From positions 1 through 64,000 of the IMG/VR virus record IMGVR_UViG_3300046542_000291: DNA of 64,000 nt; one strand, given 5' to 3'. Under the pieces are notes generated by a model, which worked only from the letters and a program-made list of their open reading frames with translations, was not told where the DNA came from and did not search any database. Shown here in pieces: positions 9,901-54,496 of this stretch (position 1 is its first letter; the number at the start of each line of letters is the position of its first letter). Made by a program: the position numbers and the translations under genes.

Positions 9901-10854
9901 TTACAGGGTGGTCGATGTCACCAAATCTTGATCCAGAATGTAGCGTTCAGCACGCTCACGCTGTTTCGGGGGTAGGTAGTCCCCATTCAACATCGAACGG
10001 GCAAGGTCTGCATCGGAATCTTTCTCGACATCCAAACGGGAATCTTCATCTTCCCGCTCACGGATCTCCATGACACCGGAAGTAGAGATGTCACCGAGGT
10101 AGTGAACACCTGGGTCGATCCAGTTGCTGAAGTCTTCGATACCAAAGGCACGCAGCACTTCTCGGATGTAGCCTTTCTTGAACGCCGCCAGGTCATGAAT
10201 ACCCAGAGCCGCTGCCATGTCGTAGTTGACATCTTCAACAGTACGTCGGCTCCACTTCACTTGTGGGTGAAGGTCAGTGATCGTCTCTGCCAAGATGGCA
10301 ATGACCTGACTGATTGGATAGACCGCGAACTGCTGTTCGAATGCGTCTGTAAGCTTTTCCAGCATTTGACTGAGATCAATCCGAACGAACTCTTCGTGAT
10401 CCAGTCCCATCATCTTGTCGTATTCCAGCACACGATGATCGTCACCTTCTACCAGCACGATACTGGTGCCGGTGTTCATTACCTTCCACTGAGTCCAAGA
10501 CACGCGGTTGGCAACAGTATTTACTTGTATGGCAAGATCGTCGTAAAGTGCTTGGAGCCACTTTGGCTCGAACAGCTTTTCAGCCAACTTTACTTGTCTG
10601 TGGAGAACGGTATCAACCGAAGTACCGAACAAGATTGCTGCACGCATGACATCCCAGTCTACATGCGCTTTCATGTTCTTATTGCGTTGGTCCATCAGTT
10701 CACCGACGATGCAGTGAACGACCTGCAGCGCGATCCGTTTGTTCGGTTGAACCATCCCGCTCAGCGAATGCTGATTTTGTGCATGCTTCAGGTAGTCAAG
10801 CATCACATCTACCTGATGTCGCACATTCAGGACAATCAACTTATTATCCGACAT
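9901..10854 (-). CDS. hypothetical protein (317 aa)
   Basis: GAGAGG SD, long ORF. Confidence 0.8.
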   Translation of the reverse strand: MSDNKLIVLNVRHQVDVMLDYLKHAQNQHSLSGMVQPNKRIALQVVHCIVGELMDQRNKNMKAHVDWDVMRAAILFGTSVDTVLHRQVKLAEKLFEPKWLQALYDDLAIQVNTVANRVSWTQWKVMNTGTSIVLVEGDDHRVLEYDKMMGLDHEEFVRIDLSQMLEKLTDAFEQQFAVYPISQVIAILAETITDLHPQVKWSRRTVEDVNYDMAAALGIHDLAAFKKGYIREVLRAFGIEDFSNWIDPGVHYLGDISTSGVMEIREREDEDSRLDVEKDSDADLARSMLNGDYLPPKQRERAERYILDQDLVTSTTL

Positions 10855-13991: not shown

Positions 13992-15233
13992 TCATTTCTT
14001 TGGTACGGTTGCTTTCTTGTAGGCCTTTACGGCCGTCAAGCGAGCACGTCGGATAGCTTCACCCAACACCTTCCCTGTAACACCTGTAGCCACCACTGGG
14101 CCAACATCTACGGCACGCACGACATCAGCTGCATCCCGAAGGTATTGCGCCTGCGGATAGTCACGTTGTTCAAAGCCTGTGCGTCCCCGAGCATCCATTT
14201 CACACGCCGAAACGAATTCATCGAATCGATGTGGTCGTCGGTATACATCAAAGATCTTCAGCAATGCCAGCAGCTTCGATGGAGTAAGGTCAAGAGCACG
14301 GTGGCCATGGGTGTGGTAACGACCTACCTTCATGGCTAAGTCCTGGCAGTCAGATGGAACCTTGAAGCGTTTGCTCACAGCCTTAATCAACGGCTCGCCA
14401 CTTTCTTCATGCCCGATGTGTTGTGGCCATGTTTCAGGTGGGGTTAATGCTTTACCCAGATCATGCATCAAGCACGACCAACGCACCGTCAGTGGTTGCT
14501 TGTACAGAGCAGCTTGTTCTAACACAGCCAGCACGTGGATACCTGTATCGATCTCTGGGTGATGAGCTGCTGGTTGTGGGATACCGAACAAGGCATCGAC
14601 TTCCGGCAACAACACTTTCAAGGCACCACATTCACGTAGAACTTGGATAAAGACCTGGGGATGCTCTTCCATCAACGCTCGGGACATCTCTTTCCAACTA
14701 CGCTCTGCCGTCAATGCGGCCAGCTCACCTGACGCACTGAGTTCGCACATCAACGCCATTGTTTCAGGGGCAATGGTGAAACCTAAACCAGCGTAACGGG
14801 CAGCGAAGCGAGCAACACGCAGAACACGAACTGGGTCTTCCGCAAAGGCTGGTGAGACATGGCGCAGGATGCGTGCATCCAGATCCCGTTTGCCGCCGTA
14901 GGGATCAGTCAGGTTGAGCTGATCGTCTTCAGCCATGGCATTGATCGTCAAGTCACGACGAGCCAGGTCTTCTTCCAGCGTTACTTCAGGACTGGCATGG
15001 AAGGTGAACCCGCCGTAGCCAATACCTGTTTTACGTTCGGTGCGAGCCAGTGCATATTCATCCCCGGTTTCCGGATTGATGAACACTGGGAAATCGGAAC
15101 CCACTGGTCGATAGCCTTGAGCAACCATCTCCTCAGCGGTAGAGCCAACCACCACCCAGTCCACGTCGGTTACAGGGAAGCCCAGCAATCGATCGCGTAC
15201 GGCTCCACCGACTTTATAAACGGGTGTTTTCAT
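13992..15233 (-). CDS. cca: multifunctional CCA tRNA nucleotidyltransferase / HD phosphatase (413 aa)
   Basis: [43 protein letters not shown] and the HD domain (HPEIDTG, LMHDLGK); closely follows the Pseudomonas Cca pattern. Confidence 0.95.
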
Positions 15234-48922: not shown

Positions 48923-49029
48923 GCAATAATATAGACCAAAGTTCGTACCTGGTCTAGTCAAAGTCGTGCGCCGGAGCCATCTCCTTTTCTTGATGGCTTC
49001 TAGAAGTGATCCTTCTGCGACTGTCACCT

Positions 49030-49059
49030 CATAACCGAGCCCTTTCGGGCTCGGTTATG
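49030..49059. terminator. hairpin terminator
   Basis: CATAACCGAGCCC-TTTC-GGGCTCGGTTATG perfect dyad. Confidence 0.8.
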
Positions 49060-49085
49060 TCTGCTTCAACTTAAAGGACATTTTG

Positions 49086-49097
49086 TGTAATAGTATA
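49086..49097 (+). promoter_or_regulatory. TGTAATAGTATA promoter-like motif, copy 1
   Basis: Identical 12-mer repeated at 49161 and 50538. Confidence 0.6.
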
Positions 49098-49147
49098 CGT
49101 GGATATTGTGCCCTCTTTGAGAAACAGTACCACCAGAGCCGAGAATT

Positions 49148-49172
49148 AAAATACTCTGCTTGTAATAGTATA
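49148..49172 (+). promoter_or_regulatory. AAAATAC-N6-TGTAATAGTATA promoter-like motif, copy 2
   Basis: Upstream of tRNA-Tyr; resembles the phiKZ middle AAanntTAC element. Confidence 0.6.
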
Positions 49173-49268
49173 CGGAAGCACTGTCGTAACGCCTAAGATT
49201 GAGTCCAGCAGCGCCTAGAGCGCGGCATAGAAAACTTTCTCTTAACGTTGCTATGGTGTTATCCTGTC

Positions 49269-49353
49269 GGGTGTGTTGGGGAGTGGCCAAACCCAGGAGA
49301 TTGTAAATCTCCCGTCGCTGACTTCGCAGGTTCGAATCCTGCTGCACCCACCA
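49269..49353 (+). tRNA. tRNA-Tyr(GTA)
   Basis: Class II cloverleaf, GGAGA-TTGTAAA-TCTCC, GCAGG-TTCGAAT-CCTGC, A73, encoded CCA. Confidence 0.95.
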
Positions 49354-49539
49354 ATTCCGGGAATGCTCTATTAGAGTGTGCCTAAAGAATCTCTTGAGAT
49401 ATACGCCCTTAACGGTACGCTCGACCTTGTCCTATGGATAACCTCGACTGCTATGAGAAGCGAAGAATGTGGTTGGTAGCGGCCCTCTCAAGTAAGATAG
49501 CTAGGTTAATGCCAGCTTAGCAAGTTACCGTGGTTTAAT

Positions 49540-49608
49540 GCCAGCGTAGTTCAATTGGTAGAACACCGGCTTAGCCGGAGGTTGTGGGTTCGATTCCCGC
49601 CGCAGGCT
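49540..49608 (+). ncRNA. tRNA-like element A with truncated anticodon arm
   Basis: GCCAGCG/CGCAGGC acceptor, GTTC/GAAC D arm, GTGGG-TTCGATT-CCCGC T arm; anticodon arm only 13 nt (CCGGC-TTA-GCCGG); no CCA. Confidence 0.8.
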
Positions 49609-49609
49609 G

Positions 49610-49719
49610 CTGATCAGAAGGCTAGCAATAGCAGAACTAAAACGAGGCGCCGGTACGCGCCTACCCAACTAACGAACGACCTGACGCGCAGGGTAATCAG
49701 TGGTTGGGGAACTGGTCAG
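49610..49719 (+). ncRNA. structured RNA, copy A
   Basis: Stems CTGATCA/TGGTCAG, GCTA/TAGC, GGCGC/GCGCC, CCCAAC/GTTGGG; linkers identical to the copy at 50201-50310. Confidence 0.8.
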
Positions 49720-49863
49720 GTAAAGAATACCCCTCTGTTGGTGGAGCGAGGCAGAGTTGGCGGCGTTAGTGATACGCAGCTGGGTTATTTGGTCTTAAGT
49801 GATCAACATCGCGGCACATTTTACCGGAGCAATGCTGGGACTAGTGCCTTACATTGTTTCATT

Positions 49864-49940
49864 GCGATCATAGCTCAGTTGGTTAGAGTACTTGCCTGTC
49901 ACGCAAGGGGTCGCGGGTTCGAGTCCCGCTGGTCGCGCCA
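49864..49940 (+). tRNA. tRNA-Asp(GTC)
   Basis: Canonical cloverleaf, CTTGC-CTGTCAC-GCAAG, G73, CCA. Confidence 0.97.
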
Positions 49941-49959
49941 TATTCACTGGAGATGTTTC

Positions 49960-50121
49960 ATGAAAGTCAAGATCCACCAACGCCCTCTTAAGGTCATGGG
50001 TCCAGCCGAATGTCGCTGCTGCGACCAACTCAGCTGGAAAGATTTGAAACTGGATAAGCAAGCATTGAAAGAAGCCGTTAACGATACAGCTTACGCTCTC
50101 GATAAACGGCGAGCAGCATAG
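49960..50121 (+). CDS. 53-aa peptide with CRCC (MKVKIHQRPL...)
   Basis: GGAGA SD; sits between tRNA-Asp and tRNA-like element B. Confidence 0.6.
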   Translation: MKVKIHQRPLKVMGPAECRCCDQLSWKDLKLDKQALKEAVNDTAYALDKRRAA

Positions 50122-50123
50122 AC

Positions 50124-50199
50124 GCCACCTTAGCTTAAATTGGTAAAGCGCCTCTACCGTAAGGTTTAGGAGATTGCAGGTTCGATTCCTGCGGTGGAT
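50124..50199 (+). ncRNA. tRNA-like element B with GNRA-capped anticodon arm
   Basis: GCTT/AAGC D arm, GCAGG-TTCGATT-CCTGC T arm, CCACC/GGTGG acceptor core; anticodon arm CCT-CT-ACC-GTAA-GGT-TT-AGG; no CCA. Confidence 0.75.
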
Positions 50200-50200
50200 G

Positions 50201-50310
50201 CCCGATAGAAGGTTCTTCGGAACAGAAGTAAAACACGGCGTCATTACACGCCGATCTAGTAAACGCGACCTAGCGATCGTAGGGTAATCAGTTACTAGAG
50301 AACTATCGGG
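50201..50310 (+). ncRNA. structured RNA, copy B
   Basis: Stems CCCGATA/TATCGGG, GTTC/GAAC (UUCG loop), GGCGT/ACGCC, TCTAGTAA/TTACTAGA; covaries with copy A. Confidence 0.8.
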
Positions 50311-50537
50311 GTACAGAGTACAGTCAGACGGGCGTATCGCAAATGCTGACTGGAACAACCTTCACTGCTTACGAGTCGGGGCAGTTCTAATCGAAAGATT
50401 GATGCAGCTGGTTAAGAGCCCAGTACTGACCACCAAATTCAAAGTTTCAAGCACCGCCTGGTCCAGAAGTTAGCCAGGGTAAAACGGTCATCCAGAGGAA
50501 GCCTGGTATAGCGATCCAAATGTAAATGTTGGTTCTA

Positions 50538-50549
50538 TGTAATAGTATA
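50538..50549 (+). promoter_or_regulatory. TGTAATAGTATA promoter-like motif, copy 3
   Basis: 20 nt upstream of tRNA-Asn. Confidence 0.6.
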
Positions 50550-50569
50550 GGACGAGCATTGCTCCCCAT

Positions 50570-50654
50570 TGGCAAGTACCCGAGTTGGTAGCAGGGGCCG
50601 GACTGTTAATCCGTTTGCGAAAGCACACCGCTGGTTCGAGTCCAGCCTTGCCAG
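50570..50654 (+). tRNA. tRNA-Asn(GTT) with long variable arm, no encoded CCA
   Basis: TGGCAAG/CTTGCCA acceptor, G73, loop CTGTTAA, variable arm TGC-GAAA-GCA, GCTGG-TTCGAGT-CCAGC. Confidence 0.8.
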
Positions 50655-50722
50655 CATTCCGTAAAAGAGTCCAATGGACTCTTTTATTCTGTCTATTAGT
50701 TCGAACCCAGGGAAGAACTTAC

Positions 50723-51289
50723 ATGTCGAAAGTTAGAACAAAAGATATCAACGGGTACATCGCGCTGTATTTACCTGACCATCCTTCAGCTAAAGAAAAC
50801 CCGAAGATGTTTGGCTGGGTGTATGAACACAGGTTAGTGGCAGAAAGTTTTTTGAATCGTCGTCTTTACGATGGTGAGGAAGTCCACCATCTGGACGAGA
50901 ATAAGAAGAATAACCACCCAGAGAATCTATTGGTACTCACGCAATCGCAACATGCGAAGTTGCATGCATGGATGAGGAGGATGGGTATTGATCCTAAGAC
51001 TTACCCAACACGTATCTGTAAAGCGTGTAAGAACGTACTATGGGTATCCCAGGAATGGTTCTGTTGCGATGCCTGTGCCAAAGTCGGTGCGCGTAAGGTA
51101 GAGCGTCCATCTAAAGAACAACTGACCATGGACATTACCGTATTGTCTTTAGTGAAAGTCGGACAGAAGTATGGAGTATCCGATAACAGTATCCGCAAGT
51201 GGTGTAAATTCTACGAAATTAATATCCAGCCAAAGTTTGCCCGCTATCGCGCAGGTGGCGGTGGTGAGGTAGCCATTCAACTACAATAA
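50723..51289 (+). CDS. HNH endonuclease with C-terminal Zn-finger/HTH (188 aa)
   Basis: YEHRLVAE...EVHHLDENKKNNHPENL; CxxC..CC..C; YGVSDNSIRKW helix-turn-helix. Confidence 0.88.
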   Translation: MSKVRTKDINGYIALYLPDHPSAKENPKMFGWVYEHRLVAESFLNRRLYDGEEVHHLDENKKNNHPENLLVLTQSQHAKLHAWMRRMGIDPKTYPTRICKACKNVLWVSQEWFCCDACAKVGARKVERPSKEQLTMDITVLSLVKVGQKYGVSDNSIRKWCKFYEINIQPKFARYRAGGGGEVAIQLQ

Positions 51290-51299
51290 AGAATTTATT

Positions 51300-51803
51300 A
51301 TGACTTACAAGCTTGAACTGATTGAACACAGTAATACCTACGAAAAAGGTAAGTTCCTGCGACTGATTGATTTACTTAGCGTCTACGAGAAGGATGGATT
51401 CATAAAGCTGATCCTTGCTGTAGAACTGGATAGTCTTGACCGCAAAGGTAAGTTGGAAACACCTTTCCATATCGTCAAGGCTTACACCGAGAGTGGCGCT
51501 TTGGTTGGGTATTCGTTTTACTATCCCAAAGAGAAGACCTGTGAGTTCTATGTACTGCCACACTGGCGGGGGAAAGGTATCGGTACGCTTCTGGTTAATG
51601 CCATGCGTGAGAACTGGTCAGGTACTTCGGTGCTCTGTGCTTACCGGGGCTTTGATGGATGGAAGAACTTCTTTGACCGTAACTTCATCCTGGAGATGGA
51701 CCCTTATGAAAATGGGGGTTCAGCAACCGAACGCAATGCGCGTAAGAAATCAGCTAAGTTGTCAATGTCTCGTCAAATGACTAAAGCTGGTATTACAGCG
51801 TAA
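51300..51803 (+). CDS. GNAT-family acetyltransferase (167 aa)
   Basis: Motif A FYVLPHWRGKGIGTLLV. Confidence 0.85.
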   Translation: MTYKLELIEHSNTYEKGKFLRLIDLLSVYEKDGFIKLILAVELDSLDRKGKLETPFHIVKAYTESGALVGYSFYYPKEKTCEFYVLPHWRGKGIGTLLVNAMRENWSGTSVLCAYRGFDGWKNFFDRNFILEMDPYENGGSATERNARKKSAKLSMSRQMTKAGITA

Positions 51804-51816
51804 AGAGGAACAACGC

Positions 51817-51939
51817 ATGGAACCGTACATGACCATCCTAGGGATGGGTTTCACAGAACACGAGCTGACGGTTTGGCTGGCTACCTTTGCAGCGTGCTGT
51901 ATGGTGGGTATGTTTGCAATGATTGCCTTTAACGACTAG
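51817..51939 (+). CDS. 40-aa single-TM peptide
   Basis: GAGGA SD; MEPYMTILGMGFTEHELTVWLATFAACCMVGMFAMIAFND. Confidence 0.65.
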   Translation: MEPYMTILGMGFTEHELTVWLATFAACCMVGMFAMIAFND

Positions 51940-51948
51940 GAAAAGAAT

Positions 51949-52260
51949 ATGTCATGTGAAGATCTTCTGTTTCATGGTAAGCGTACAACTCAAGGCGTAA
52001 AGATCCTAGAGTATCCAACCTACACCATCGCTAATCTAACGGGTAACCGTTGGAACGTTCTGTGTCGTATGTACGGTGACTCGGGTTATCAACCCAGTGA
52101 AGCGGCCTGTAAGGAGTGGGTGCGTCGCCACATCAATCATTACGTACGTTTGGAAGAGCTTACCAAACTGCAAGACAAACTGGACCGGATAGAAAAACAC
52201 ATCAAAGGCCTCGGTTATAACTCCATTGAAGAATTTGCGGTTGAGCACACAGGTGACTAG
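51949..52260 (+). CDS. hypothetical protein (103 aa)
   Basis: AGGA SD. Confidence 0.7.
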   Translation: MSCEDLLFHGKRTTQGVKILEYPTYTIANLTGNRWNVLCRMYGDSGYQPSEAACKEWVRRHINHYVRLEELTKLQDKLDRIEKHIKGLGYNSIEEFAVEHTGD

Positions 52261-52263
52261 ACC

Positions 52264-52386
52264 ATGGAAATAGTAATGACCCTGTTTGGCGCACCCATTA
52301 CTGGCGAGCAGTTAGTTTTCGGTATAGCTGCTCTTTGTATAGCCACCGCATTTATCTGCGTGGGTTTAATCGTATCTGGAGATTGA
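52264..52386 (+). CDS. 40-aa single-TM peptide
   Basis: MEIVMTLFGAPITGEQLVFGIAALCIATAFICVGLIVSGD; packed between neighbouring genes. Confidence 0.6.
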   Translation: MEIVMTLFGAPITGEQLVFGIAALCIATAFICVGLIVSGD

Positions 52387-52387
52387 T

Positions 52388-52642
52388 ATGGTACAGGCAT
52401 GTTGCGACAGCGTAGGTAAGTACATCAGTGAAGAAGGTGTCCTGGATACCGAGAAGGTACGGGAACGGTTTGGGCTGGACGCGGTAATCGAAGTACGTGA
52501 GGATAAAGAATCTGAACTGGCCAAATGGATATTCACCAGGGAAGCACGCTACCCCTCAGAGACATTTGTGATTGTCGGGGAAGTGGAATCGAAACTCTGT
52601 GTTTGCCCATGCCACCGAGTTGGTTTGATGGTGATGCATTAA
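52388..52642 (+). CDS. hypothetical protein (84 aa)
   Basis: GGAGA SD; C-terminal CVCPCH; followed by a terminator. Confidence 0.65.
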   Translation: MVQACCDSVGKYISEEGVLDTEKVRERFGLDAVIEVREDKESELAKWIFTREARYPSETFVIVGEVESKLCVCPCHRVGLMVMH

Positions 52643-52645
52643 TAG

Positions 52646-52668
52646 GGAGCCTTAGGGCTCCTTTTATG
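52646..52668 (+). terminator. hairpin terminator
   Basis: GGAGCC-TTAG-GGCTCC-TTTT. Confidence 0.7.
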
Positions 52669-52710
52669 CCCTATCGTTATGTTATTAAATTTACCGTTTA
52701 CGAGGCAACT

Positions 52711-53433
52711 ATGATCGAGCAAATGCTGAATCCAGGTGTATTGCTCCCCGAGGATACCGGCGACGTGATTTTTCTTTACGACCCCGTTACGAATACGGAT
52801 CTCATCGGCGGCCCTGCGGTGAGTACGTTATCAGGGGGCGCAATCGCCGACTCAACTATCCTGATCAATAACCAGCCCACACTTAAGTTCCCAACTACAA
52901 ACGCAAAGCATGTCATCACGTGGCCAACGGATCTAAACTTGGCTATCGGCAACTGGACATTAGAATGGTCTTTTATCAATGACAGCACACCGGCGGCGTA
53001 CGGCAACGATCTTGTAATGTATTCCAGGTCAGGTGGTTCGGGTGTAGGTGTTTATATGCGCTTCGGCAACACGGGTTTTGGTAATCGTTATTTCATGTCC
53101 GATCCGAGGGGTGCGGTTGACCAAACTTTAACACAACCTCTACCGATTGCTAACTCATCACTGACCGGGGTCACCACTAACATAGCCTTGGTGAGTATTC
53201 AAGGTGTTATCCGAATCTACGTCAACGGCGTAGCTCAAATGATGGCCCTAGGTGTAAGCACTAATACTTACGACAGACCAAGCATGATAGCTCAGGGAAT
53301 GGATAAGATTTATTCCATTGGTCTGGGGTGGGCTGTTTCTGCTGTCCCCGCGGTACCAGGTCACCGCGGACGAATTAGGTTGAGTAACTTCGCCAGATAC
53401 AGACGGAGCTATACGCCAGGACCGTTGGTGTAG
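52711..53433 (+). CDS. ConA/LamG-like lectin-fold protein, probably virion-associated (240 aa)
   Basis: GAGG SD; GNWTLEW, NIALV..QG.IRIYVNGV, IRLSNFARY pattern of phage LamG-like modules. Confidence 0.65.
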   Translation: MIEQMLNPGVLLPEDTGDVIFLYDPVTNTDLIGGPAVSTLSGGAIADSTILINNQPTLKFPTTNAKHVITWPTDLNLAIGNWTLEWSFINDSTPAAYGNDLVMYSRSGGSGVGVYMRFGNTGFGNRYFMSDPRGAVDQTLTQPLPIANSSLTGVTTNIALVSIQGVIRIYVNGVAQMMALGVSTNTYDRPSMIAQGMDKIYSIGLGWAVSAVPAVPGHRGRIRLSNFARYRRSYTPGPLV

Positions 53434-53436
53434 AAT

Positions 53437-53463
53437 AAAAATACTGGTCAGGTAATACTATAC
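53437..53463 (+). promoter_or_regulatory. AAAAATAC-N6-GGTAATACTATA promoter-like motif
   Basis: Variant of the 49148 motif, heading a non-coding RNA block. Confidence 0.55.
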
Positions 53464-53703
53464 AGGAGACTGCACTCAAACCTGTCTCTGTTGGAAGGTG
53501 CCTAAACTCAACCTAGGCAACGGGCTGCACAGCCAATAGAGTAGAAGCCCTACGACCACGTCAAGCTGTCTATAGTGAAGCCGTGATCAGGGAAGCCCAC
53601 CGCCGTACCCTTAGTATATCGAATCCGGGATAGACCCTGGTGAAGACCCAATAATCACCCGAAGGGCAAAGAAGGTGGACGGTACTACAGCGTATCTGTA
53701 GTA
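53463..53703 (+). ncRNA. candidate structured RNA
   Basis: No plus-strand ORF; stems CTCTGTTGG/CCAATAGAG, CCACC/GGTGG, GGTGA/TCACC, TACTACAG/CTGTAGTA; seven GAAG tetramers. Confidence 0.5.
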
Positions 53704-53777
53704 GCTCTGATCGTCTAACGGTAAGACAGTTGCCGCCCAGGCAACGTACATGGGTTCGACTCCCGAGATGAGCACCA
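53704..53777 (+). ncRNA. degenerate tRNA-like element C (nominal CCC anticodon, G33)
   Basis: GTCT/AGAC D arm, GTTGC-CGCCCAG-GCAAC, TTCGACT T loop, only 4 acceptor pairs, ACCA end. Confidence 0.7.
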
Positions 53778-53815
53778 TTTATAGATTCAATTGCCCCCGG
53801 AGGCATTTGCGTCGA

Positions 53816-53907
53816 ATTTGAAAGATATAGTGGGTATCACTGGCCTGACCGTGGTTGGTCCTAATGCTGGTTTCCCTCTTAATGAGAGGTAGGTATCTCT
53901 TTCAAAT
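53816..53907 (+). ncRNA. candidate four-way-junction RNA
   Basis: Closing stem ATTTGAAAGA/TCTTTCAAAT-like with inner hairpins AGTG/CACT, GACC/GGTC, CCTCT/AGAGG. Confidence 0.45.
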
Positions 53908-53984
53908 ACAGTCGCTCTTCTTACCCAAGATCGGCAACCTACGAGAATTAAGTGCACTGCTTATAAAGAGTGCCAGAGTTTGTG

Positions 53985-54070
53985 AGCGGGGTCGTCTAGC
54001 GGCCTAGGACACCGGTGGCCACCATAGCACCAAGCCGGAAACACAGGTTCGATTCCTGTCCCCAATCCCA
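53985..54070 (+). ncRNA. tRNA-Glu-like element D with expanded anticodon loop
   Basis: Glu-type D arm GTCTAGCGGCCTAGGAC, CCGG-[19 nt]-CCGG, ACAGG-TTCGATT-CCTGT, GGGG/CCCC acceptor core, CCA. Confidence 0.75.
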
Positions 54071-54077
54071 AAGTTTA

Positions 54078-54153
54078 GGATCAGTAGCTCAATTGGCAGA
54101 GCAACCGATTCCAAATCGGTAGGTTCCAAGTTCGACTCCTGGCTGGTCCGCCA
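54078..54153 (+). tRNA. tRNA-Trp(CCA)
   Basis: Canonical cloverleaf, ACCGA-TTCCAAA-TCGGT, G73, CCA. Confidence 0.95.
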
Positions 54154-54177
54154 GTTTTAAGAATCTGCTGCAGCAGA

Positions 54178-54292
54178 TAGTGTGAGACATTCGGTCTGCG
54201 ATAGTGCCAGCGCCTCGTAAGCGTGAGAAGACCCTAGGCCTCAGGATGAGGGAAAAGACCCGTAGCCGACGGAGAGCATCACACTAACACCA
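54178..54292 (+). ncRNA. candidate multibranch RNA ending ACACCA
   Basis: 8-bp closing stem TAGTGTGA/TCACACTA, inner hairpins AGAC/GTCT, CCTC/GAGG, CCGT/ACGG. Confidence 0.45.
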
Positions 54293-54310
54293 TCCCCATT
54301 GGAGTATCCC

Positions 54311-54496
54311 ATGACGTCAGTAGTTACCATCAAAGCACACCCGGTTGAAGGCAAGCAGGTCCAAGTGACCGTGAGTGACCCAACCATGAACCAGGAAGTC
54401 CTGGAACAGTTCTATCTGCAGAACGGTGAAAGCGCAGAACGCGTTGTCTACGAAGACCGTGTGGTATCCGTTCGTGAAGTTTCCAAACCTGCGTAA
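54311..54496 (+). CDS. hypothetical protein (61 aa)
   Basis: GGAG SD, strong phage codon bias. Confidence 0.7.
   Translation: MTSVVTIKAHPVEGKQVQVTVSDPTMNQEVLEQFYLQNGESAERVVYEDRVVSVREVSKPA

Follow-up and report, generated by a model that had tools for sequence, protein, structure and literature searches.

Anticodon-less tRNA-like modules and a linked, apparently undescribed structured RNA in a jumbo phage

tRNA-like RNAs that do not decode, and a possible counterpart in a 310-kb phage

Elements with a cloverleaf fold but no decoding function are found in several biological settings, including the murine gammaherpesvirus 68 TMERs (a tRNA-like element plus pre-miRNA) and the mascRNA at the 3′ end of MALAT1/MENbeta, where an intact acceptor, D arm and T arm are combined with a short or odd anticodon arm, another structured RNA lies next to the element in one transcript, and tRNA enzymes cut at its borders. 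These are eukaryotic or from eukaryotic viruses, and their D and T loops also serve as pol III promoter boxes. In bacteria, the YrlA or Y RNAs (Rfam RF02553; Chen et al. 2014, PMC4201824) carry an anticodon-less tRNA mimic, also found in phages, that keeps the T arm, the D arm and the covariation of the Levitt pair. Phage tRNA clusters also contain stable RNAs that are not tRNAs, such as the T4 "species 1 and 2" RNAs of unknown function, which are co-transcribed and co-processed with the tRNAs, and the CCA-less T4 tRNAs need the host 3′ processing enzyme RNase BN. Finally, engineered tRNA scaffolds and polycistronic tRNA-guide RNA arrays use a tRNA body to protect or punctuate a passenger RNA, and passengers placed in the anticodon arm are tolerated.

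Here, we examined a window of 64,000 nucleotides (positions 1 to 64,000 of IMG/VR record IMGVR_UViG_3300046542_000291) from a 310-kb jumbo phage, for which four tRNA elbow mimics with intact D and T loops but differently destroyed anticodon arms had been proposed from sequence alone, interleaved with intact tRNAs behind a shared promoter motif. The observation held, as all four elements (E1 to E4) are present at the proposed places with the proposed anticodon arms (E2 starting at 50125 and the E4 helix at 53984), although for E3 an "intact elbow" applies to the loops only. The features of the region, all on the + strand, are as follows.

49086–49173 (+): two copies of the promoter-like motif TGTAATAGTATAC (49086–49098 and 49161–49173), upstream of tRNA-Tyr, E1, tRNA-Asp and E2, in a conserved context of 37 nt
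49269–49353 (+): intact tRNA-Tyr (GTA), CCA encoded
49540–49608 (+): E1, tRNA-like module with a 13-nt anticodon arm (49566–49578) and N73 = T at 49608; no CCA
49609–49722 (+): domain 1, copy 1, with helices P1 49610–17/49712–19, P2 49621–32, P3 49645–62, P4 49664–71/49701–08 and P5 49680–92; invariant joiners include AGAAsTAAAAC and GGGTAATCAG
49864–49940 (+): intact tRNA-Asp (GTC)
50125–50198 (+): E2, tRNA-like module with a 5-bp acceptor and a 20-nt anticodon arm capped by GTAA (50151–50170); no CCA
50199–50313 (+): domain 1, copy 2 (P1 50201–08/50303–10)
50445–50517 (+): domain 2, a second conserved three-helix module found only in the jumbo-phage relatives
50538–50687 (+): promoter-like motif (50538–50550), tRNA-Asn (50570–50655; long variable arm, no CCA encoded) and a terminator-like hairpin (50661–50687)
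53451–53463 (+): promoter-like motif (2 mismatches) in front of E3, E4 and tRNA-Trp
53704–53777 (+): E3, degenerate tRNA, probable pseudogene
53984–54067 (+): E4, tRNA-like module derived from tRNA-Glu, with a 27-nt anticodon arm (54012–54038); ends 10 nt upstream of tRNA-Trp
54078–54153 (+): intact tRNA-Trp (CCA)

ARAGORN, which had been named beforehand as a check, called only the Tyr, Asp, Asn and Trp tRNAs and none of the four elements, whereas the Rfam tRNA model (RF00005) scored E1 to E4 at 59.5 (E 2.4e-10), 32.3, 25.8 and 30.6 bits, respectively, with E3 falling below the gathering score of 29. Structurally, E1 has an acceptor of 6/7 pairs (A.A at 4:69), a D arm GTTC-AATTGGTA-GAAC, an anticodon arm CCGGC-TTA-GCCGG with a 3-nt loop, and a T loop TTCGATT; E2 has GG in the D loop and a T loop TTCGATT; and E4 has a D arm of tRNA-Glu type, a T loop TTCGATT, no CCA, and an acceptor of 4 bp followed by two mismatches. 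E3 has a 17-nt arm with a 7-nt loop (CGCCCAG) but G33, anticodon CCC, an acceptor of 4/7, a T stem of 4/5 and an encoded ACCA. Thus, none of the four has a 5-bp anticodon stem with a 7-nt loop and U33, nor a 7-bp acceptor with a CCA end. In contrast, the elbow of canonical tRNAs (D-loop GG, T-loop TTCRA, U8-A14 and a 15:48 Levitt pair) is kept in E1, E2 and E4 (the last read directly from the sequence), but not in E3, where A15.C48 does not pair. In the whole genome, strict T-arm hairpins on the + strand number 7, of which 6 lie in this 5-kb region. The motif TGTAATAGTATAC occurs 6 times in the window against 0.9 expected, 4 of them in front of these clusters, and precedes the tRNA clusters of relatives as well; its promoter function is inferred.

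We found no support for assigning the elements to two other known classes. RF02553 gave only weak matches across tandem tRNAs (19.7–32 bits), none reaching its gathering threshold of 69 bits in the window or in loci with permuted modules; no Ro-binding helix was seen; and a Ro60/Rsr (TROVE, PF05731) gene was absent from this phage and from 5 related phage genomes, with positive controls. In addition, E1, E2 and E4 have the normal tRNA order, and only modules in relatives (loci L044, L040 and L046) have the permuted YrlA order of T arm, capped acceptor-like stem and D arm. No tmRNA was found in the window by either ARAGORN or Rfam, and in E1 and E2 the tRNA-like part is contiguous.

A covarying 5-helix RNA follows E1 and E2

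The original prediction did not recognize that E1 and E2 are not free-standing, but are the 5′ modules of two diverged copies of a larger conserved RNA. An RNA of about 113 nt with five helices and an invariant core (domain 1) follows the acceptor 3′ strand after 1–3 nt in the window, in phages Psa21, D6 and TPWB-08, and in about 35 IMG/VR contigs, and about 40 phage contigs of 25–455 kb carry this RNA, mainly from phages of Pseudomonas, Vibrio and uncultured hosts. It had no meaningful match to any Rfam 15 family at E values up to 10, even when a 150-nt slice was searched, and appears undescribed. Across the alignment, 95.4% of 997 cells pair, against 69.8% in shuffles and at most 48% when partners were slid, and 23 of 30 pairs show changes on both sides. 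RNAalifold independently recovered the same five helices, our covariance model (R1) scored the two copies at 137.2 and 120.1 bits, and minimum-free-energy folding gave both composite RNAs as a cloverleaf plus a 5-helix domain, with z-scores of −2.8 and −3.1. In E2, domain 2 follows as well; it is 92.7% identical to that of phage D6, with compensatory changes seen by eye in 5 copies (ATCG/CGAT, ACCG/CGGT, ATTG/CAAT and others).

Per-arm conservation was then compared in 16 modules located in front of domain 1, which were parsed by a pattern that itself requires T8, A14 and near-complete stems. In these, the 15:48 pair is G:C in 9 and A:U in 7 with no mismatch, the D stem is 4/4 in 14 of 16 and the T stem 5/5 in 15 of 16, whereas the anticodon region ranges from 13 to 102 nt and is never canonical, which matches the tolerance of engineered scaffolds, though here the arrangement is natural and conserved. 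Loci L005 and L007 share the acceptor, T arm and domain 1 almost exactly but have unrelated anticodon arms of 17 and 23 nt. Evolutionarily, the modules have different D arms and acceptors in different clades, which fits repeated recruitment of different tRNAs. Domain 1 can also stand alone, as in Vibrio phage 1.106.O, where it has no tRNA-like module and its own terminator; in loci L032 and L034 it is preceded by a canonical tRNA with encoded CCA; and in at least 8 loci a true tRNA starts 7–20 nt after it, although many copies have no tRNA downstream.

The interpretation offered originally, that these are selected non-decoding tRNA mimics rather than products of random decay, is therefore partly supported: well supported for E1 and E2, which belong to a family in which the acceptor, the D arm, the T arm and the 15:48 pair are kept and covary, reasonably supported for E4, and not supported for E3. 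The body of E4 is 95% identical to its ortholog, against about 79% for the adjacent true tRNA-Trp, though this rests on one ortholog. The same D arm and AAAC variable loop recur in circularly permuted modules in relatives and in anticodon-less forms in unrelated phages.

Possible roles of the tRNA-like modules

Functionally, we posit, with moderate confidence, that E1, E2 and E4 are selected tRNA-like modules that keep the tRNA "top half" and the L-shape, with the anticodon position having become a free spacer helix, and that they would act as handles for the host's tRNA-maturation machinery. In this view, RNase P would cut at the 5′ side and RNase Z/BN-type or exonucleolytic trimming would act at the 3′ side, thus excising the linked RNA from transcripts of the tRNA array, giving it defined ends or stabilizing it, since these enzymes read the acceptor/T minihelix and the elbow and tolerate any anticodon arm. 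That the phage encodes an enzyme of the CCA-adding type also counts in favor of this reading. E4 would be a body of the same kind placed just in front of tRNA-Trp. The anatomy, conservation, covariation and distribution are established by our sequence analyses, whereas transcription, cleavage and the role as a handle are inferred, and a search for RNA sequencing runs listed none, while phiKZ, the relative with published transcriptomes, lacks domain 1. Of the two functions originally proposed, decoys and processing signals, the latter fits this anatomy. However, several acceptor stems are atypical (A.A mismatches, bulges, 5 or 8 bp), which might impair RNase P, and the permuted relatives of E4 have a capped acceptor and cannot be RNase P/Z substrates, such that for that lineage the elbow must serve another purpose. 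If correct, this would be a natural bacterial counterpart of the logic of TMERs, mascRNA and tRNA scaffolds, with the module lying 5′ of a cargo that is a 5-helix RNA of unknown function.

Because the link is so short and conserved (N73, a conserved G, then P1), a less likely alternative is that the module stays joined to domain 1 as one rigid molecule, with the elbow and acceptor helix docking onto an as yet unidentified tRNA-binding partner (RNase P, EF-Tu, a synthetase, the CCA enzyme, a modification enzyme or a phage protein), the core acting as inhibitor, ribozyme or ligand sensor, and the anticodon arm being free because it points away from the partner. Consistent with this, domain 1 has a riboswitch- or ribozyme-like pattern of 34 invariant columns between covarying helices, a variant class (loci L030, L033 and L039) shows three correlated core changes, and some members carry large conserved insertions in the anticodon position, as in a tRNA scaffold. 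Against it, domain 1 occurs without any tRNA-like module and also behind canonical CCA-ending tRNAs that must be released to work, and the modules come from different tRNA lineages. Speculatively, domain 1 could also be a new class of functional phage RNA with its own activity, such as a ligand-binding aptamer, a ribozyme or a tight protein decoy, whose partnership with a tRNA top half is part of the mechanism, delivering the core to, or measuring it against, a tRNA-binding machine. Together with the standard and permuted tRNA-Glu bodies, this would mean that phages widely use anticodon-less tRNA elbows as a general RNA-targeting module.

The main idea of the original prediction, that the elements are decoys for host defences aimed at tRNA (anticodon nucleases, toxins acting on the acceptor end, or sensors of uncharged tRNA), seems unlikely to us. 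In its favor, the tRNA body is kept while decoding is lost, phage tRNAs can reportedly counter defences aimed at tRNA, the phage encodes an enzyme of the CCA-adding type, and the capped, permuted relatives of E4 cannot be processing substrates, so an elbow-binding partner must exist. However, anticodon nucleases read the anticodon loop, which is here absent or hypervariable (a 3-nt loop, a GNRA cap, a 17-nt loop, insertions up to about 100 nt), so that decoying them is unlikely by inference; E1 and E2 have no free CCA end unless they are processed and tailed; and the tight link to domain 1 is left unexplained.

These findings matter for annotation, since phage tRNA clusters are usually annotated as lists of tRNAs plus "pseudo" or "tRNA-OTHER" calls, and in the records of Psa21 and D6 these very elements are unannotated or mis-called, whereas some such calls are conserved, non-decoding tRNA bodies under selection for the L-shape. 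They also provide a new structured RNA to characterize, and Psa21, D6 and Vibrio phage 1.106.O offer a concrete test bed for what tRNA-elbow mimics do during infection.

E3 and turnover in the tRNA cluster

E3 is probably an ordinary decaying tRNA gene, as its defects are spread over the acceptor, the T stem, position 33 and the 15:48 pair, and our searches found no homolog. That all four elements are such pseudogenes, with elbows surviving by chance, is very unlikely and is already contradicted for E1 and E2 by the family-wide covariation of stems and of the 15:48 pair beside free anticodon arms, which neutral decay would not give, as well as by the E1 score of 59.5 bits and by the conservation of E4 above that of the true tRNA beside it. 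Nevertheless, the cluster is dynamic, with a partial duplicate of the 5′ end of E1 at 49506–49520, a homing-type HNH gene nearby, and a degenerate tRNA-Tyr and tRNA half-remnants in Psa21.

Four tRNA-like elements among intact tRNA genes

The 64-kb window is the first part of a complete, 310,396-bp phage genome with terminal repeats (here G000) that was assembled from a rhizosphere metagenome, and whose nearest named relatives are the phiKZ-like jumbo phages Pseudomonas phage Psa21, D6 and RVTF4. ARAGORN found four tRNAs in the window, whereas the Rfam tRNA model also hit three of the four tRNA-like elements (E1, E2 and E4) and hit the remaining one (E3) only when given that stretch alone. Together with the features described below, these are, by window position:

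14862-15218 (-), in a 416-aa open frame: PolyA_pol-family (CCA-adding-type) nucleotidyltransferase (PF01743, 61.5 bits)
49269: tRNA-Tyr
49506-49520: partial duplicate of the 5' end of E1
49540-49608: E1 (59.5 bits)
49609-49722: domain 1, first copy
49864: tRNA-Asp
49960-50122: small ORF of 53 codons
50125-50198: E2 (32.3 bits)
50199-50313: domain 1, second copy
50445-50517: domain 2
50570-50655: tRNA-Asn (GTT)
50724-51290: HNH endonuclease gene
53704-53774: E3 (25.8 bits, below the gathering score of 29)
53985-54067: E4 (30.6 bits)
54078: tRNA-Trp

Reading of the sequence confirmed every sequence detail given with the original prediction, in that the D loops carry GG, the T loops read TTCGA, and the anticodon arms are 13 nt (a 3-nt loop), 20 nt (GTAA cap), 17 nt (G33, with a frayed acceptor) and 27 nt. 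T-arm-like hairpins are confined to this region of the genome, and a promoter-like motif, TGTAATAGTATAC, is enriched in the window (6 copies against 0.9 expected), standing in front of each cluster as well as in front of the tRNA clusters of relatives. The interpretation that had been attached to these elements, namely that all four are selected, non-decoding tRNA mimics that possibly serve as decoys for tRNA-targeting defences or as processing signals, was only partly supported, as detailed below.

A conserved phage RNA behind E1 and E2

E1 and E2 are parts of a larger RNA. The sequence downstream of E1 and of E2 is a diverged duplicate that matches unannotated DNA in Psa21, D6 and an unrelated 47-kb phage, TPWB-08, and pattern scans of IMG/VR returned about 35 further loci (L005-L039) from phage contigs of 25-455 kb. 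We call this RNA, of about 113 nt, domain 1; outside the window it lies, for example, at L001:5469-5585 (in Psa21), L002:5582-5698, L004:1478-1594 and L050:2471-2596. BLAST found the element in only seven GenBank phage records, never annotated, and a pattern scan of about 185,000 bacterial and archaeal species genomes returned three hits, two of them on contigs of 47-49 kb, so that domain 1 looks phage-borne. Because the family was collected by exact pattern scans, it is biased towards the conserved core. No Rfam 15 family matched, either in a scan of the region at E-values up to 10 or in one of a 150-nt slice, and literature searches by topic and by sequence motif found no description.

Structurally, an alignment of 34 distinct copies (A1) has 34 invariant columns separated by five helices. 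On the structure we proposed, 95.4% of 997 cells pair, against 69.8 ± 0.9% in shuffles and at most 48% when partners are slid, and 23 of 30 pairs show changes on both sides, in 268 compensatory cells. RNAalifold predicted the same five helices independently, whereas a trimmed MAFFT alignment (A2) misaligned helices P1 and P2 and was not used. A covariance model (R1) found exactly two copies in this genome (137 and 120 bits), one in each of the related genomes G001-G004 and D6, and none in RVTF4 or phiKZ. A variant class in three rows of A1 (L030, L033 and L039) has three correlated changes in the otherwise invariant core, with CGACC becoming CGGCC and GGTAATCAG becoming GAGAATCCG, which looks like a tertiary contact or an altered specificity. 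HDV-like and hatchet ribozyme topologies were considered for domain 1, as were tmRNA, an intron-bearing tRNA and a CRISPR-repeat-like RNA decoy as alternative readings, but none had supporting structure or a model match.

Behind the E2 copy lies a second conserved, three-helix module (domain 2), which in the jumbo clade is located between domain 1 and the tRNA-Asn promoter (L001:5585-5664, L002:5698-5775, L005:9944-10022(-) and L007:574-651(-)) and shows compensatory changes. A look-alike element (CAAGC...TTAAAAC...hairpin) occurs at L002:5336-5416 and L024:5311-5390.

In most loci, the acceptor 3' strand of a tRNA-like cloverleaf ends 1-3 nt before domain 1, with N73 followed by a conserved G and then P1. 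After an automatic D-arm finder proved too noisy, a stricter parser recovered 16 distinct modules, and five more can be read by eye. The parser itself requires T8, A14, at least 3 of 4 D-stem pairs, at least 3 of 5 T-stem pairs and at least 5 of 7 acceptor pairs, so those features are partly built in; beyond these minima, though, the D stem pairs 4/4 in 14 of 16 modules and the T stem 5/5 in 15 of 16. The Levitt 15:48 pair, which the parser does not constrain, is G:C in 9 and A:U in 7, with no mismatch. In contrast, the region between the D arm and the variable loop is 13, 16, 18, 20, 22, 23, 25 or 64-102 nt long, always closes in a helix and is never a canonical anticodon stem-loop, and loci L005 and L007 have the same acceptor, T arm and domain 1 but unrelated anticodon arms of 17 and 23 nt. 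Evolutionarily, different clades have different D-arm and acceptor sequences, which points to repeated recruitment of different tRNAs. This per-arm comparison, which had been named beforehand as a check, speaks for selection on the L-shaped body and against neutral decay. The reading that all of the elements are plain pseudogenes is thus very unlikely, and is effectively excluded for E1 and E2.

Domain 1 does not need the module. Vibrio phage 1.106.O carries domain 1 (106 bits) with no T arm upstream and a terminator downstream, whereas in loci L032 and L034 a canonical tRNA with encoded CCA precedes a variant of domain 1, and in at least eight loci a true tRNA begins 7-20 nt after it. Domain 1 is thus an autonomous RNA that usually lives inside tRNA arrays.

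The tRNA-Glu-like body of E4, and the inferred role of the modules

The D arm and AAAC variable loop of E4 are those of tRNA-Glu, as in E. coli tRNA-Glu, and among the 81 distinct viral occurrences of the same D-arm pattern, 53 were classed by script as canonical tRNA-Glu. G003, a 315-kb relative, has an ortholog in the same place, directly upstream of tRNA-Trp. From the 5' acceptor strand to the end of the T arm the two differ at 4 positions, with one identical run of 39 nt, whereas the neighboring tRNA-Trp differs at about 16 of 76 positions, mostly compensated. The 3' acceptor strands differ, with 8 bp paired in G003 and two mismatches inside a longer irregular helix in E4. The case for E4 rests on this one ortholog; an exact scan for its arm found only G003, and no antisense target of the E4 loop was found within the genome.

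Other relatives (G002, Psa21 and locus L046) lack E4 but carry, just after tRNA-Trp or tRNA-Ser, one or two circularly permuted versions of the same body, in the order 3' strand of the anticodon stem, AAAC, T arm, an acceptor stem capped by a tetraloop, D arm and 5' strand of the anticodon stem. Such modules lie in L044 (minus strand, just after tRNA-Trp), L040 (minus strand, after tRNA-Ser) and L046:6940-7090, and occur in relatives and in many unrelated phage contigs (also L063, L075, L087, L093, L100, L103, L105, L114, L116, L120 and L142). Among the remaining occurrences of the D-arm pattern, 12 are permuted, 9 have the normal order with a non-canonical arm (for example, a 12-nt arm in L060), and seven fall in an "other" class, four of which, on contigs of 345-378 kb, carry an insertion of about 65 nt. 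Four contigs of 8-378 kb, three of them 358-378 kb (L062:7006, L072 on the minus strand, L073:9937 and L126:1849), carry a tRNA-Glu-type body whose anticodon arm is replaced by a conserved insertion of about 65 nt. The permuted order is that of the YrlA tRNA-like domain (PMC4201824); however, a YrlA/Ro reading was rejected, as no TROVE/Rsr gene is present in G000 or in 5 relatives, and Rfam's YrlA model did not reach its gathering score.

Functionally, what survives in E1, E2 and E4 is the acceptor/T minihelix plus the elbow, the part of tRNA that is read by RNase P, RNase Z/BN, the CCA-adding enzyme, EF-Tu and T/D-loop modification enzymes, all of which tolerate changes to the anticodon arm, whereas ribosomal sites and anticodon nucleases do not. 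Ribosome binding by the mimics was considered and dropped because the anticodon arms are too variable in size. Given that the modules are fused to a cargo RNA, that the cargo occurs alone elsewhere and that the units sit inside tRNA arrays, we posit, with moderate confidence, that the most economical reading is a handle for tRNA-type processing or stabilization. While the structure, conservation and distribution of these elements come directly from the sequence comparisons, their transcription, cleavage and role as handles are inferred from sequence alone: the sequence was found only in the source DNA metagenome, with no RNA run listed, and phiKZ, which has published transcriptomes, lacks domain 1. 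The phage's own CCA-adding-type gene and the lack of encoded CCA in E1, E2 and E4 are compatible with this reading. That the module and domain 1 act as one molecule remains possible but is less likely, and that the elements are decoys for defenses that bind the acceptor end or the elbow appears more doubtful still. The capped, permuted relatives of E4 cannot be RNase P/Z substrates and, at least in that lineage, the elbow itself must be the ligand for something as yet unknown.

Decay and other features of the tRNA clusters

E3 has three mismatched acceptor pairs, one mismatched T-stem pair, G33, and A15 opposite C48. No homolog was found in 5 related genomes, in GenBank phages or in a metagenome pattern scan, and an IMG/VR scan with its D-arm pattern returned only unrelated tRNA-Gln/Asn-type genes; G003 goes from the promoter motif through about 120 nt straight to E4. 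With mutations spread over all arms, E3 meets the criterion that had been named beforehand as refuting the original prediction, and is best read as an ordinary pseudogene.

The cluster shows other debris too. The 15-nt partial duplicate of the 5' end of E1 (TTAATGCCAGCTTAG, 49506-49520 against 49535-49549) lies 29 nt upstream of E1 and is likely a recombination scar, and the 186 nt between tRNA-Tyr and E1 are absent from G001 (locus L019). Psa21 has a degenerate tRNA-Tyr where D6 has an intact one, and a tRNA 5'-half remnant after the tRNA-Asn promoter (L001:5303-5385 and L001:5715-5745), both of which are plain tRNA decay in the same clusters. The HNH endonuclease gene sits between the two tRNA clusters, as in Psa21 and phiKZ, and is a possible driver of these rearrangements.

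The tRNA-Asn has a long variable arm (86 nt in total), as in Psa21, and no encoded CCA (the 3' end reads GCAT), whereas D6 and RVTF4 have ordinary 76-nt tRNA-Asn genes. The 53-codon ORF (start MKVKI..., with a CRCC motif) lies between tRNA-Asp and E2, and is conserved at the same place in Psa21 (L001:4715-4882), L005 and RVTF4. Finally, another non-coding element of about 150 nt, starting TTTTGAAA.TAACTTACAACGACGGTAAGG, is highly conserved inside the relatives' tRNA clusters (L001:5155-5300, L002:5075-5215, L005 (minus) about 10440-10600 and L007 (minus) about 1170-1320), but was not seen in the stretch of the window that was read (49000-54400).
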